In this document: in pieces, positions 13,072 through 25,693 of the stretch
Position numbering within the stretch: position 1 is the stretch's first letter
How the letters are laid out: every line of letters starts with the position of its first letter
NCBI RefSeq assembly: GCF_011386835.1
Contig: NC_088800.1
Coordinates: 29,078,001-29,142,000, forward strand
Source of the DNA: Chrysemys picta bellii
Taxonomy: Eukaryota
Length of the DNA stretch: 64,000 bases
Direction of reading: 5' to 3'
Program-made: the position numbers and the translations under genes
The notes under the pieces: generated by a model
Told to the model about the DNA's origin: nothing
Databases searched by the model: none
The model's input: the letters and a program-made list of their open reading frames with translations, nothing else

Positions 13072-15677
13072 ATGAAACGTACAAATCTCTTCAGGATTTG
13101 AGAAGAGAAAGTAGAAGAAAGCCAGACAGACGCAAGAAGAAAAGGGAAAAATAACTTCACAAATGTCTTCAGGCACAAGCCACGTCAAGTCAGTTGACTG
13201 AGTTGATCGATGCTGACATTCAAGGCTCTTCAGAGGTGGGAAGTGAAAGTGGTGTTGGTAAGAGAAAAAGAAAAGGCGGTGTGTGAGGAATCCAAAATAT
13301 TACCACATTCAGAAAACAATGTTATGGTTGTTGTGGAGGAAGAGAAGGAAATCCAGCCTTTTTGGATAGACAATGAAGAACACAGCGGTAATACTGCTAT
13401 AACTGAGAAACTGGTACAGTCGACTAGTCCTGCTGCTGTAGATGGGAATGATGAAGAAGAGTTGTGCAGTAATGACCCAGCCTCTTGGAAGTACCTAGAT
13501 ATAAAGAAAAGAGAACTTATTGTATTGAAGGGTCCACCACATAAGCCCAAAAACTTTCCTCATGATTCTTTTGGCAGGAAATTGCCGATAACAGTTTTTT
13601 CTAAACAGCTGAGTAATGGCGAATGTATTGAAAGAGACTGGATGGTGTGGAGTAAAGATGCTGAAGCAATATTTTGTTTCCTTTGCAGTCTCTACAGAAG
13701 TGCAACTCAAACTAACCAATTACATCATTCAAAATTTGGCGAAGGTGGAATTGCCGATAATTGGAAAAAGTTTTACGAGAAAATCAAGAGTCATGAAGAA
13801 AACGCTTTACATTTCAGCAATTACATTAAGTGGAAGGAATTATTTCAGACACTCAGTGATAAAAGAGGCAGCATTACAACATAGTATTAAACAGGGGGAG
13901 GAAAAATGGCGTAAAATATTAACTGCCATTGTTGATGTAATTATTTTCCTGGCAAAGAATAATCTGCCATTTCATGGTAGCCATTCTACTGTTGATTATG
14001 ACAACTGTGGGCTTTTCTTGTCAATACTGAAGCTTGTGGGCAGGTACAATACTGAGGTGAAACCACATCTAGACATGGTAGCTCAATGCAGAGAGCCTGG
14101 CTGAAGAATGCAGGCTCACTACCTGTCATGGCGTAGTCAGAATGAGTTCTTGAAACTGTGTGGGGAGAAAAAGTTTTAAATTCTATTCTTGAAGAGGTAA
14201 GAAAAGCCCGATATTTCAGCATTGTTGTTGATGGTACATCTGATGTTTCACACACAGAGCAGTTAGTTTTTATTCTCAGATATGTGATGCAAAAAAAACA
14301 AAATTGGGATGTGCATGAAAGATTTGTTAAACTAGTAGATTTTGAAAAGAAGACTGGTGCAGATATAGCAGAACAGATAAAGAGATTTTTTAAAGAATGT
14401 GATTTAGAACTATCTTGGTGCAGAGGGCAGGGATATGACAATGCCTCTAACATGTCAGGAAAATTTTAGGGAGTAAAGACAAGAATTTTGGAAGAAAATG
14501 CCCAAGTCTATTTTTCTCCATGCATTGCTCACACGCTGAACCTCTGTGGCACCCACGCTATGGAAACCAGTGTGGAGGTAAAAACATATTTTGGAAATGT
14601 TCAGAAACTCTATAAAGTATTTGCTCTTAGCCCTGCAAGATGGAAAATTTTGCAGACCACTGCAAATATATCTCTTCACTCTGTATCTAAAACTAGGTGG
14701 AGCGCAAGAGTTGATGCTGTTCGCCCCCTAATCAAAAAAAATCATCACACAGGCGTTTCATTTATCTTCCGAAATCCAGGCAGATGTTGACTGTTTGATT
14801 AAGTGGCTTAAGTCATTTGAATTTGTACTTCTTACTACAATATGGTTCAACGTGCTTCAGTGTATTGATGATAAGAACAAGGTCCTACAAAGCGCCAAAT
14901 CAACAATGGAAGAGGGAACTAAACACATGAGCAAATTAGTCAAGGTAATTCAAACATTGAAAGATTGTTGGCCAATTTTTTTTGAAGAAGCCAAACAAGT
15001 CGCTTCAAGCCTCGGCATTGACCCAAAAATGAAAAGTGGCTCAAGGATCCGGAAGTACAAGCGATTCTTTGACAACACAGGGGATGCAGACTATACGTTT
15101 GACTCTCCCAATATTCAGTTCAAAGTACAGGTGTTCTTCCTGACAATGGATTTGCTTCTATCAGAGCTAGGAAGTCTTGGTGAAAGAATGGCTGAAGTCT
15201 CAAATTTATTTTCACCCATTTTGTGTCCGCCAGATAAAGTGGATGAATCTTCTATAGAAAATTTTGTTGACATTTTGGCCACAGCATATCCAAAAGACCT
15301 CCAGAGAGAAAATCTTAAAAGAGGAACTTAGAATCTTTTACAAAATAAAAGAAGATTCCAACTTAAGAGTTGATGGACATATAACCTCTGCACTTGCACT
15401 TCTTAATGCTCTCTTCAAAAAAGGGTTGGAAAATGTGTTTCCACAGATTTGTTTATGCCTACTAACAGTGTTGCCAGTGTCAGTAGCATCGGGAGAGCGT
15501 GCATTTAGTAAGCTAACATTGATTAAAAATAGTTTGCGTTCAGCCACCGGGGAAGAAAGGCTGAACCATTTACTCACTTTGAGCATAGAATATGAAATGG
15601 CCAAAGACATACGTTTTGATGACATTATTAATGAGTTCACCAAAATGAAAGCGAGGAAAAAAATTCCAGCTGTATAA
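13072..15677 (+). pseudogene. hAT transposase pseudogene
   Basis: Ordered fragments: TTF-type zinc finger (RDWMVWSKDAEAIFCFLC), FLAKNNLPFHG, FSIVVDGTSDVSHTEQLVFILRYV, CRGQGYDNASNMSG, CIAHTLNL, TRWSAR and the dimerisation domain LPVSVASGERAFSKLTLIKNSLRS. There are several frameshifts and stops. The start ATG at 13072 is inferred. Confidence 0.93.
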
Positions 15678-19199: not shown

Positions 19200-19790
19200 C
19201 CCCGTACGCGCCGGCTAAAGCCTCTCAGATCAAAAGCACCAGGTCACTCTCCGATCCAAGTGACCTGCCTCTCTCCTTTCCGATTCCCGCAGCTGGCATG
19301 GGGGGATCCCTGCAGGCCGGCTGCTCCAGCGGCGGCTGGGGAGCGGGACAGGGCTGGAGCAAGCAGAGCGTTTACCTTGTCAGTGTCACCGGGAGCTCAC
19401 GTCCAGTCCCCCCACCGCGAGGATCCCTCTGTGCTGCTGATGCAAAGCCTGATACCCGAGCAGCCTCAGTCCATGGAGAGCAGCGGGGAGCCCCTAAGGA
19501 ATGGCCAGTGCCCAGCCAGGCAGCGCCTGCTGGAAACCCTGCGGGATCCGAGGCGGGTTCCCAGGCTGCGGGGAAAGCGCCTCTCTCGCGGGCGCCCTTC
19601 CTCGCTCCCCTTTCCCTCCTGCCTGAATGGGCAGAGAAACACACAGTCAACAGGCAGCGGCGGACGAGCTGCTGCCCCTGCCGCCACCCGGCGGCTCTTC
19701 TGGAGAACAGCATCTCCCGCTCGGCTCACAGCGCTTCCCTCCGCACCTCGGCACAGGCTGAAACCACTTAGCTACCACTAACAACTGTTG
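19200..19790. promoter_or_regulatory. CpG-island-like, non-repeat GC-rich region; possible promoter or 5' exon of a minus-strand transcript
   Basis: Dense CpGs in an otherwise CpG-poor background, with no TIR, TSD or LTR ends nearby. Minus-strand donors AAG|GTAAAC (19376/19375) and GAA|GTAAGT (19039/19038); acceptor CTGCCCATTCAG at 19623. Confidence 0.6.
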
Positions 19791-20153: not shown

Positions 20154-22912
20154 CCTGGCTTAGCCTCTGCTTCAAGGGGAATGCTCAGCCAGAATTACAA
20201 TAAAAGATTCCATTCACACACACAGGCCTACTTAGAAATTCTTTACTTCACCCCCCTGAGCGAGCACTGTAAAGTGGCAGTGTAGACAGTGCTATGGCAC
20301 TGGTAGCTAGGCTCCCAGTGCTTTAATGTCAGCTGTGTAGACATACCCTTGGTAACTAGCACTAACTCTACTTTAAAGTGAAAAGGATTGGTAACACCAC
20401 ACCCAACACCTGCCAACCAACCTGGAGAGATTACAGAAAAGAGTAATCAGGCCAGAGTCCTCTGGCACTTCAAAAGGCGAGAGTAGGCAGAGTAACTCAC
20501 ACGTATGCTCTTACACAATTAATTTATTACAAGGAGAATATTTGCTGTGTGCCAAGACAGTAATGCCCTCAGCAGCTCTCTTTCATGGGAGGGAGGGCTG
20601 GAATACTTGTCTCCCAGCAATATAGTCATCATTTAAGTGTATACATGGCAATTATGTTAGCTGCTACAGTCTTACAAGGTGCCAAAGTGTTTTGTGTGTG
20701 TGGCTGTGATCTCATTTCAAGATCATTCTCTTCGTGGGAGACTTTGGGGAAAAAAGTCCCTATTAGAATTGAGTGAATGATTTCCAACAAATAATGTATT
20801 CAACTATTTTAGCTCCTTTTTCTGATCATGGAATAGCCATAGATTTCTTTGATTTATTCATTATTAGAACCTTTTAAGTTTTTCTTATTTATAGATTGGT
20901 CATTAAAGGTCACTGCAAGTTTGCACTAATGAATATTTGTAATAAGAGTTGTGTTACCTGGTTTTAGAATTGACCTGGTAAACCACAGCCTATGGTTTGT
21001 TTCCTGGATGGATGAGTGGGGAAGTACTTCTAACATGAATACTCACTAAAGAAAGGTTAACTTTTTATTTCTACACAGAGGACTCTGAAATTTGATGCTG
21101 TCAACATTCTGCTAGTAAAGTGTGATGCTCTGACGTCTGTGGAAAGTGGAACACAAAATGAGTACAAACACAGGGAGTTCTGTTTGAACTTCAAGTCCAT
21201 GTACAATAGATTTTAAGTATTTGCCTGCCTCTCCACACCATATTAAATATACTGGAACCTAAATTATAACCTAGCTACAGTCCTGTACTACTACTAACAA
21301 TCTTTCCTTATGATGAAGTGTTCCATAATGAGATCTCAGTGTCATAACAAGATATCCACAGGGAAAGACTCGTTAGGAAGTTAATCACTATTATTCTGGT
21401 GCTGGGTGGAGCCATTTTGTTACTTGCACTTAGACCAAAGTAAAACAGATTACTTTTCTTTACAAAAATGTTGGGGTGAGGGATGTAGCATTTGTATTAT
21501 AGTAGCACTGTCCCAGCAGGGCCGATAAGTTGCCCACTGTGCTGTGTATACACACCACACCAAGAAAGGACTGTCCCAGCCCCCAAAGCAGTGCAAAAAT
21601 GACATAAGCAGATACAAACAGAAAAGGAGCACAAAGTAACAAGAGAGATTTATGATAGGGATAATAAGCAGCTATCACAGCACAGTCCAGGCTACCTAAG
21701 CACTCTTGAGTGTTTTGTGAGCACCATAGTGCAAGAGGTGAGTTTTAAGGAGAAATTTGAAGAACAATGCAGAAACCTTGAAGATTTTTTTGATTCCCTG
21801 TTGCATTGCTTCCTACTTCCCATAGGCAACTTTAGGGGGACTATGATGAATGCTTAGTGCTCAGAAGCACAGAGCTAGGCTGTACAGTCAGGGGATTCAT
21901 ACAGCTTCCTTTCCCTCCTGGAGACCTTTAAATCTTCATAGGGGACATGTAAAGCATGGTTGGTGGTATCTAGAATGGACACTTTCAGTATGCACCTTAC
22001 TAAGCCAGCCCACAGTTCAAGCTGATTAGAAGTTTGAGCTCAGGGAAAGGGCTAGGAGGGGAATAGAAAGGAAGATTGAGGCCAGCCCAATAGTACATTG
22101 GTAAAGCTGTGCCAGATAGCTAGCAGAATGCTTGCTTAGTTCTTGACCCTGCCCACAGCAGCATTCAAGTGACTAAACGCAGTATCTTGAATCAGATATA
22201 GTGTGAGCAAACATTCTAAAAGCTTCCCCACATAGACAGACCAGTGTACAGAGCCTCTTTTCTGATCTGCATTACCCCTAGTTTATCCACTCTGGCTCTG
22301 TCCTGGGTAAAGAATGCCAATTACCTCATTTTATGCCATTCAAAGGGCTTCAGTGAACCCTATTCTCTACTCAGCACCCAGGTTCTGCTCTTTGTCAAGA
22401 ACCATGCCGGTTTCCTGGGTCCTTACACACAGTCAGAATGGATTGTTAGTCTTGTCCTAAAGAGCGGAGTACTTCACTGCAGAGCATTTGCCATCCTGGC
22501 ACAGTCTGATTGCAGCGGTCTCTCACACCTGAGGTTGAGAACAAATGATTTAGTCTATAATTGAATGCTGATGTGAAGCTAGGCCACCTAATCTTGTCAG
22601 AACTCAAGCTGAAGGACAATATTGTTTGAGTTGCCCAGGACAAAGAAGTCCAACTAACAACAGTTTATGTGCTGCTGAGAGGCATGTGGGATAAACAAAA
22701 TGCCTATTGAAACAGATGTTAATAGCATTCAGAAGAAGGCTCAGTGTTTTGAAGTTCACCATTCACAATTACAGTCACAAATAACAGACTCACAATATTG
22801 GTGATCTGAATATCAGAAAAAGCAGAGGACAGAGCATATACCCAATCACTCACCCATCTCACCATTTTACTTTTCTTCTTGTCTCTTTTCCTCCCCTCCC
22901 CGATTCTACAGT

Positions 22913-23797
22913 CAGGGCCGGCTCTAGGTTTTTTGCCTCCCCAACCAAAAAAATTTTGGCTGCCCCCCACCCCAGCCCTGGGCTCTCACCCCCCCCCAGT
23001 GCCCTCCCCCACCTGGACCTCCTGCCATCCCAGGCCTGGTCTCTCTCTCCCCCCTACCCACACCCCCTGCCGCCCCAGCCCTGAGCTCTCTCCTCCCCCC
23101 CACCCACACCCCCTGCCGCCCCAGACCTGGGCTCCCCTCCACCAGTGCTGACTCCGCCTGCTCCCCCCTTGCCTCCAGCCAGTCCGGCGCTGTCAGGGTT
23201 GGGGTAAGCAGTGGGGCTCTCGGGCCGCGCCTCAGCCCAGGGTCCCTCCAGCCAGGGATCCTACCTCCAGGACTGGCCGGACCCGGGAGGGCAGAGCTGG
23301 GGGACCGCCCCGGCAGGGGGCTGAGGAGCTGGGACAGGGTAGCCCCAGAGGGAGTGGAGCCCCGGAGAGTGGGATGCGGGCCCTGCATGACAGCACCCCG
23401 CCCTCTATGGCCCCGCTGCTGCTTCTGCTTCTGGCTGCCCTGCTGCAGTCCCTGGGCAGCTCGGGCTGTTTCGCCCAGCCCCAGCTGCGGCACTGGGGGG
23501 CAGCCGCCCTGCGGTACCTGCAGGTGGCTCCCTGTGCCCCGCGGGGCGGCCCCCAGCACGAGTATCTCCTGCTCGGCCCAGCCACAAGGTACGGGCGCAG
23601 CTCCCCCACAGCGTGAACCGTAGCAGCCCCAGGGCTCCCTTCACGCACCACGCACTGCTGCTGCCAGGGCCGGCTCTAGGCTTTTGCCGCCTGAAGCAAC
23701 AAAAAACAAAAACAAAAAAAGATGGCCAGAATGCTGCCCCTGAAAATGTGCCACCCCAAGCACGTGCTTGGTTTGCTGGTGCCTAGAGCCGGCCCTG
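22913..23797. mobile_element. Composite hAT non-autonomous element (two left ends, one right end) with GC-rich cargo
   Basis: CAGGGCCGGCTCTAGG occurs at both 22913 and 23665, with a single right end CCTAGAGCCGGCCCTG finishing at 23797. The TSD TCTACAGT / TCTGCAGT (7/8) flanks the whole unit. Confidence 0.85.
23407..23588 (+). other. Signal-peptide-like candidate first coding exon inside the composite hAT element
   Basis: The ATG opens MAPLLLLLLAALLQSLGSSGCFAQPQLRHW...HEYLLLGPAT, followed by a donor-like AAG|GTACGG. The source gene is not recognised. Confidence 0.4.
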
Positions 23798-25693
23798 TCT
23801 GCAGTCATTTCTAGCCACAACTCATCTTTCCCTCTGCACCATTCATCTCCCTTTCCTCTTTGGGAGAGAGTTCTTTCCCCCAGTGCTAAAGCAGGAGCCT
23901 AGAGATGAACAGAACCCCTAGTTTGCCTGATTAAGTATTGGCAGGTACAGCTGCCATCACTTTTTCCATCAGCCAAAGAGGAAATTTGTTGCTGAGCTGG
24001 TGAATGGAAGAGGAACAATGTTTCCATAGCTATGTATCTATTCTTCAGATTAGCTGACATGCAGAATTTATTTTCAACAAGTATATTTCTATGAATGTCA
24101 CTTTGTTATCATGCTCCAATAAAATCCTAAAGCTTTCAGCAGAGATTTCATAATCTCATACAGTGAGTTTAGAAAAAGGCAAAAAGTTCATTCTGATTGC
24201 GGTTTTATGTTTCTAAAATATAGACAACACTAAGGACCCTGCGAAACAGACACCATTCTTTCCAAAAGTAGAGCAGGATTCACTGAAGCACTCCAGGACC
24301 AGAACTGACAGTGAGTTTAGAAGTATTTCTCCTGCAGTAATCCCTAAAGAAAATATTTAATACTTCAGCTTGTGACTGTAGGTATAGATGAAAGATTGAA
24401 ACGGTATGCCTTTGGGGAAGGCCTGAGTGAAACCAGTGCCACTAGACACACAAAAGACTTGATCATTCACTCAGCACATCATGACCAAGCCAGATCCCTT
24501 CTATCAGGTCATAGGCAGGAGTATCCACCAGCTTAATTTAAAGGGCACATTGCAACTACATCCATTTGAAATGCACAGGGTACCCAGGATCCTTCTGTCT
24601 TCACAGCTGGAAGATACTCCTGCCCATAAAGACATGCCAGCTCTTAGGCCAGCTGCTGCAGTGAGAGAATAATTTCCTGTTTCTGTAAGGTTTCATTGAA
24701 ATGCTTTGGTCACAGCAGCCTGGAAAGTGGACTTCAGGGCTCCTTTGAAAATCCCACACTAGGTTCCTTCCCAAGGTAAAAGTACTGGGGGAGGAAGAAA
24801 TGTTATGGTACAACAACAGGGGATTGCCCAGGAAAGCAAAAGATTTTGTTCCCATTACTATTCACCAGGAAGCATCTTGCCCTGCCAGGGACCCCACTCC
24901 CTGTCCTTTCCCTCTAGTAGTAGGGAAGGAGAAAAAAACACCACACGGGAGATGAGATTTTGTGAGAATAAGAAACTCTTGTACTGAAGTTTTCCCTTTT
25001 TTAAAATTGTCTCAATCCCTTATAACTCATCCCCATATCTCTTTGTGAGCCACTAACAGATGAAATAGGATCTTTCTACTTTCAAGACAAAGCACGTGCC
25101 ATGGATCTATTTCCAATTCTTTGGGAGAGCAGGAAACAACATTGCAGAGAGTTGGAAGTCTGCTGCTCAGTACAAGGAAGCCCATTTTAGATCTGCAGGA
25201 GGATCCAACAGATCCGTGTCATAGTTAAGGCTGGGAAACCTGCTCCAAGGCCTTATAATGCAGAGCCAGATACTGAGCGAGTGGAATGTTAGACCCTACA
25301 CAGGCTTGGACGGAGCATGCAGTTTCTACAGGTTTCCTCTTCATCTCTATGTTAATCAATCACTTTATTAGTGACAAAAATTCACATGTCCACATCTGGG
25401 TATTACTACTTGACAATCATAGGTTTTAACAGAATTGCTGCTTTGAAAACTTGAATAATAGTATTTAGCACTTCACATCCAGAGGTCTCAAAGCTCATCT
25501 CAAAGGAATAGTATATTGCCCTCATTCTACAGAAGAGCAAACTTAGGTACAGACAGGATAAGGGACTTGCCCCAACCCACAAAGTAAGCCAGTGGCAGAA
25601 CTGGAAGGAGATATGGATTCCAGAACTTCCAGTCCAGAGATCACATGTCACATTGCCTCTTAAATAACAGATGATTATTTGGAAAAGAACAAA

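Follow-up and report, generated by a model that had tools for sequence, protein, structure and literature searches.

The analyzed window, i.e., the whole stretch of 64,000 nucleotides from Chrysemys picta bellii, harbors at positions 22913-23797 an 885-bp unit in which part of a host gene residing at another locus lies between the ends of a hAT-type transposon and inside one target-site duplication. The 16-mer terminal inverted repeat (TIR) CAGGGCCGGCTCTAGG is present in exact form at 22913 and 23665 on the plus strand and at 23782-23797 on the minus strand, in agreement with the original prediction of two identical left TIRs sharing a single right TIR. Allowing up to three mismatches, six matches to this 16-mer were observed in the 64-kb window vs. 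0.35 expected. The left target-site duplication TCTACAGT (22905-22912) and the right one, TCTGCAGT (23798-23805), agree in seven of eight positions (chance of approximately 4e-4 for one pair) and enclose all 885 bp. At the inner site, the eight nucleotides preceding the inner left TIR (GCTGCTGC, 23657-23664) match the right flank in five of eight positions only (chance 0.027), and the duplication was therefore correctly assigned to the whole unit and not to the inner miniature element (MITE). The partial likeness of 23657-23664 to 23798-23805 could be due to chance or represent a trace of the inner MITE joining the cargo.

The outer left end (22913-22953, plus strand) consists of the 16-nt TIR (22913-22928) followed by subterminal MITE sequence and spans about 40 nt, being 83% identical to the left end of the inner MITE and 86% identical to the MITE sequence at 5700-5734. 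It is followed on the same strand by C-rich tandem repeats of approximately 46 nt (22967-23159; TRF: 23006-23134, period 46, 2.8 copies), the number of which varies between copies, since other copies skip 65-154 nt within this segment in the alignment of Logan contigs. The right end of the whole unit is formed by a complete 133-bp MITE on the plus strand (23665-23797, left TIR 23665-23680, right TIR 23782-23797), showing 81-83% identity to both ends of a separate 222-bp MITE of the same family, which is located at 5700-5921 on the plus strand and flanked by the perfect 8-bp duplication TTTCCTAC at 5692-5699 and 5922-5929.

Transposons of the hAT superfamily are recognized by short CAG-type TIRs in combination with 8-bp target-site duplications, and YARNG termini define their ends. 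The 16-nt TIRs begin with CAGGG at all three ends, and duplications of eight base pairs were found around both 22913-23797 (7/8) and 5700-5921 (8/8). In other copies of the family, the foreign flanks show a consensus of approximately CTTATAAC beside both ends, which fits the nTnnnnAn target preference of hAT elements and suggests a TTATAA-like preference for this family; TCTACAGT departs from nTnnnnAn at positions 2 and 7. A transposase open reading frame (ORF) is absent from the unit, in which only the gene fragment and GC-rich shadow frames were observed. The element is a non-autonomous hAT-type unit that moved as a whole. Elsewhere in the window, a decayed hAT transposase remnant was noticed at 13210-15677 on the plus strand (weak Dimer_Tnp_hAT match, E 0.004, below the cutoff). 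It probably belongs to another hAT family, since no match to the TIR 16-mer lies near it. A reverse-transcriptase remnant is located at 7455-7898 on the minus strand, and the Rfam search of the window gave no matches.

The cargo (23160-23664, 505 nt) features a GC content of 72% and a CpG observed/expected ratio (o/e) of 0.44 vs. 0.21 for the window. Its description as CpG-rich thus holds relative to the background, whereas the ratio (0.37-0.46 across the cargo) stays below the value of 0.6 that classical CpG islands exceed, along with GC above 55% over at least 200 bp. The segment upstream of the captured ATG (23160-23406, plus strand; 73% GC, CpG o/e 0.37), which may stem from the promoter or 5'UTR of the parent gene or from an older transposon interior, is also kept in another copy, represented by P0002, a 171-aa ORF deduced from a Logan contig, whose residues 68-163 match positions 23269-23556. 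Within the window, 19251-19750 is the sole 500-bp stretch passing the CpG-island thresholds (67% GC, o/e 0.63); its distance to the element downstream is 3.2 kb, and it possibly represents a genuine promoter.

The signal-peptide ORF was found as described, except that it starts at 23407 and not at 23408. It derives from LOC135974104 of C. picta bellii, whose 512-aa product is designated P0005 here and whose zebrafish orthologue is si:ch211-67e16.11. Based on a tblastn search of P0005 against the window, the plus-strand segment 23407-23562 (frame +1) encodes parent residues 1-52, comprising the signal peptide and the start of the mature part, with 43 of the 52 residues identical (83%). At 23563-23564, about eight parent codons (residues 53-59/60) are missing, so the reading frame of the match shifts from +1 to +3. 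The fragment continues in the latter frame at 23565-23664 (approximately parent residues 60-98; 47-51% identity with a six-residue gap), includes the region of the conserved H-K-V-R-A-L-L-P motif and ends exactly at the inner TIR. Both pieces, which were aligned and searched apart, obtained a joint E value of 1e-14, supporting the claim that a host first coding exon with a signal peptide had been captured. No other exons of LOC135974104 were detected by tblastn in the window, i.e., within 23 kb upstream and 40 kb downstream, and no second cargo copy was found in it.

Logan contigs from one putative RNA run (organism A) and from three DNA runs of three related organisms (B, C and D) were aligned to positions 22300-24400 at 80% likeness. 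The summed word depth amounts to 26-38 in the flanks and to 5e3-1.5e5 in the cargo bins, and every bin between 22868 and 23861 reaches thousands to hundreds of thousands. Relative to the flanks, depth is about 17,000-21,000-fold at the MITE right end, 800-4,200-fold at 23152-23435 and 190-720-fold in the coding part at 23436-23648. Since summed contig depth is a rough copy-number proxy, these values are to be read as orders of magnitude, and the cargo looks like roughly 10^2-10^3 copy-equivalents in the three related organisms. Depth of the coding part is several-fold below that of 23160-23400, which suggests either many internally deleted derivatives or an upstream block older than the capture; part of the cargo may accordingly represent older transposon interior and not host DNA. 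Furthermore, 35-89 distinct contigs per DNA run carry an alternative letter at single sites of the coding part (23467-23599). Together with the protein searches, these results provide the cargo-bearing copies whose existence had been proposed for verification. The copies are about 8-19% apart, and the cargo family is present in both pond and sea turtles. Metagenome contigs were scanned for exact patterns of the cargo/inner-TIR junction and of the coding part, with no match.

Mobility of TIRs and cargo as a chimera is indicated by several findings. Per run, about 210-235 contigs of other loci leave the alignment at 22912/13 and about 290-370 at 23797/98, with about 290-310 leaving at 23797 itself, and their flanks are mutually unrelated apart from the TTATAA-like consensus beside the ends. 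Such a pile-up of ends with disagreeing flanks is the look of true transposon termini. Moreover, the start of P0002 is translated left TIR and subterminal region (57% identity over 47 aa to the window frame across 22913-23050), and P0002 as well as P0004, its near-twin on another contig, continue from the left TIR into the gene-derived part (83% over 40 aa vs. the parent). Left TIR and cargo are therefore linked in other copies, too. P0001, an unnamed 114-aa product of Caretta caretta, retains residues 53-59/60 lost in the window copy and reaches approximately parent residue 116, beyond the cut at the inner TIR, which suggests that the original capture was longer and that the three-ended form is a derivative.

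Regarding the origin of this three-ended form, the 133-bp MITE might have landed locally, beside or inside an older element already inserted at this position. The 5/8 match of the nucleotides before the inner TIR to the right flank points in this direction, as does an identity of just 83% between the outer and the inner left end outside the TIR. However, the better duplication flanks the whole unit, and the cargo does not resume after 23797. In addition, two paralogue contigs, X12 record 7 and X6 record 31, contain the cargo tail, inner left TIR, MITE and right end in the same order before entering foreign flanks, so the three-ended arrangement is not private to the locus at 22913-23797. A local origin is therefore considered unlikely.

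The original prediction further envisaged a working cassette, in which transcripts start in the GC-rich part, the signal peptide is translated and splicing proceeds from 23588 onto downstream exons. The ATG and the hydrophobic core are indeed intact, a C. caretta gene model (P0003) joins the ORF of a related copy to interferon-gamma exons, and chimeric RNAs have been reported from some animal Pack-TIRs (Tan et al. 2021, Nat Commun 12:4280, PMC8277862). However, the donor-like string AAG|GTACGG, although present on the plus strand at 23586-23594 as predicted, represents in the parent frame internal Lys-Val-Arg codons in the middle of a conserved motif; parent coding sequence runs through 23588, and no exon boundary is located there. 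Following the frameshift, the ATG frame is nonsense up to a stop at 23614, the CpG ratio of the cargo is not island-like, and the peptide of the copy at 23407 is encountered in no protein of the searched collections. At 23467/69, 23483, 23492, 23515 and 23558, the majority letters among the copies convert Cys, Gln, His, Tyr and His into Arg, Arg, Arg, His and Pro, which are the parent residues, and four of the five changes restore a CpG, a pattern of CpG decay. The proposed check for RNA junctions was likewise unfavorable: in one run that is only guessed to be RNA and was considered solely at the contig level, no joint was listed at 23588, no depth appears downstream of 23862, and cargo contigs are only those 6-15% diverged, originating from other copies or the parent. 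P0003, for its part, is a gene model predicted automatically, carries no name and shows additional odd sequence at its C-terminus. Overall, a functional secretory exon trap at this locus is very improbable. Copy number, age, decay and the coding nature of the donor string instead point to an ancient, highly amplified Pack-hAT fossil and not to a demonstrated secretory cassette. As far as the thin evidence goes, the copy at 22913-23797 has no detectable function and nothing points to activity. In the same run of organism A, exact low-depth contigs (depth 2-3) were seen in unique upstream sequence at 22324-22466 and 22714-22861; these may represent intronic transcription or DNA carry-over.

At this locus, unique contigs of organisms C and D pass from either flank into the adjoining TIR for 23 nt, those of organism B do so on the right side, and no contig directly joining both flanks was obtained in organisms B, C and D. 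Flank divergence at the locus is 0.3% for B and C and 1.5% for D. Based on these contigs, the insertion appears to be fixed and shared in the relatives examined, the overlap of 23 nt being shorter than the 31 nt of the tool's bridging rule.

In principle, an ORF of this kind could also arise by chance in the GC-rich interior of an ordinary transposon family that owes nothing to a host gene. High copy number is compatible with such a shadow ORF, and so is the outcome of the phmmer search, in which the 60-residue peptide retrieved only two proteins, P0001 and P0002, both of them transposon-type ORFs, from 1.84 billion representative proteins. The parent was missed in this search, likely due to a diverged N-terminus of its cluster representative. 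It was reached by a word search limited to region 1-60, using P0003, the Caretta cluster mate, as a longer carrier. This search yielded RefSeq proteins of 508-512 aa starting with the same peptide, namely LOC135974104 of C. picta bellii, LOC119863467 of Dermochelys and a Natator product. Against a shadow ORF stand the match, in two frames, to a 512-aa protein whose conservation extends from sharks to turtles and the extension of the matches (residues 17-52 and 60-98) beyond the low-complexity leucine run. Accordingly, this explanation has very little probability left.

For P0005, 171 homologues were identified at E ≤ 0.001, covering tortoises, pond and sea turtles, geckos, anoles, snakes, lungfish, sharks, rays, gar, bowfin and many teleosts, in which the gene bears the name si:ch211-67e16.11; mammals and birds were not represented among the 120 matches listed. 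The host gene hence persists elsewhere, as determined at the protein level. The orthologues are conserved unnamed vertebrate proteins of about 510-560 aa with a signal peptide. For the parent protein, neither a Pfam family nor a PDB sequence match was obtained, and its language-model look-alikes point weakly (0.86) to legumain/peptidase C13. No paper naming the zebrafish orthologue was found.

A transfer in the reverse direction, i.e., a turtle gene receiving its first exon from a transposon copy, would be compatible with the shared sequence, and nothing beyond that speaks for it. In the alignment, the gecko, anole, snake, lungfish, shark, gar and carp orthologues keep the N-terminal motifs of the cargo region, namely the hydrophobic N-terminus, the R-W / A-A-L-R-H block and the P-G-H-K-V-R-A-L-L-P-D-G block. 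The exon thus belongs to the ancestral gene and is the source of the transposon copies. Moreover, the copies are nearest to the turtle proteins and, like these, are devoid of a segment that follows the R-G-G motif in squamates and fishes, from which a capture in the turtle lineage is inferred. The reverse direction can therefore hardly be credited. A resident first exon struck by separate MITE insertions is practically dismissed, even though the peptide is a genuine gene N-terminus, since the gene has no further exon in the 40 kb downstream or the 23 kb upstream, the segment is highly repetitive in three organisms whereas its flanks are single-copy, the coding fragment is frameshifted, and a single target duplication surrounds the whole unit.

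Taken together, 22913-23797 is with good confidence interpreted as an old, fixed and amplified non-autonomous hAT Pack-TIR insertion that carries a captured host gene start and is now a fossil. According to the scenario proposed for this Pack-TIR insertion, a member of a short hAT MITE family would have gained approximately 260 nt of a host first coding exon in the ancestor of living cryptodiran turtles. The captured piece would have comprised the start codon, the signal peptide and approximately the first 100 codons, possibly along with upstream DNA, and the chimera would most likely have formed by a template switch in the course of repair or replication. The unit would then have been recognized at its outer left TIR and at its right TIR by a hAT transposase acting in trans and inserted with an 8-bp duplication. 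Subsequently, the chimera may have amplified, giving rise to copies with variable internal deletions whose number is estimated at hundreds to thousands. The three-ended form would be a derivative of a longer capture, in which the complete 133-bp MITE now provides the right end. The copy at 22913 would have entered at TCTRCAGT and later lost CpGs and, within the coding fragment, approximately 22 nt as well as the reading frame.

The element shares the 16-nt TIR, 8-bp duplications and an A-rich subterminal tract with the hAT MITEs at 5700-5921 and 23665-23797, and differs from such simple MITEs by an extra left end and approximately 700 nt of repeats and host-derived sequence between its ends. 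In composite or alternative-end transposition of Ac/Ds-type hAT elements, left and right ends of different simple elements are used. Similarly, the left and right ends of the turtle unit do not belong to one simple element; however, its left piece is a partial MITE devoid of its own right TIR, and mobilization of two whole neighboring MITEs does therefore not fit. Pack-MULEs of plants are amplified TIR elements with gene fragments, often GC-rich 5' ends of genes; they belong to the Mutator superfamily and feature 9-10-bp duplications and long TIRs. The turtle unit resembles them as an amplified TIR element with a GC-rich 5' gene fragment, but it is a hAT unit showing no MULE features.

Being a non-autonomous TIR element with an interior taken from a host gene that resides at another locus, 22913-23797 corresponds to animal Pack-TIRs, in particular Pack-hATs, and fits the Pack-TIR definition. 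Among the 100 animal genomes surveyed by Tan et al. (PMC8277862), hAT elements were the main Pack-TIR carriers (208 of 370), and the parent fragments tend to be GC-rich. Plant Pack-MULEs are named in the abstract of the same article. Only four multicopy cases were reported therein (three from frog, one from alligator) with about 3-4 copies each, for which template switching was proposed, and the painted turtle assembly (chrPic1), with just 330 TIR elements annotated, had 0 Pack-TIRs. Unlike these animal Pack-TIRs, the gene-derived part of the element described here apparently exists in hundreds of copies, is old (approximately 8-19% between copies) and occurs in pond and sea turtles. No paper on a turtle hAT MITE with a gene fragment was found in the literature, and the repeat may well have been catalogued already as an ordinary hAT-N family.

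Capture of gene fragments by cut-and-paste transposons is well documented in plants, whereas in animals mostly single-copy events are known. A hAT family carrying the signal-peptide exon of a conserved gene at apparently high copy number across turtles indicates that animal Pack-type elements can amplify massively, and hundreds of dispersed gene-start copies constitute a dated natural experiment on the fate of such sequences. There is a small chance that a few younger or better preserved copies of this gene start, with its ATG, signal peptide and possible promoter, are transcribed and spliced onto neighboring genes, resulting in chimeric secreted proteins, with the interferon-gamma fusion in P0003 as one candidate. 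If this were true, the family would represent a natural genome-wide agent of signal-peptide exon shuffling in a vertebrate.

P0003 itself, an unnamed 296-aa gene model of C. caretta, consists of 111 residues of the related copy's ORF, an interferon-gamma part and an odd C-terminal sequence, and positions a cargo copy in front of IFNG in the same orientation. Its interferon-gamma part matches Pfam PF00714 (E 1e-24) only from profile position 24 onward, indicating that the normal IFNG first exon is missing. P0003 is probably a prediction artefact, and dispersed gene-start copies can mislead gene prediction, as this Caretta model suggests.
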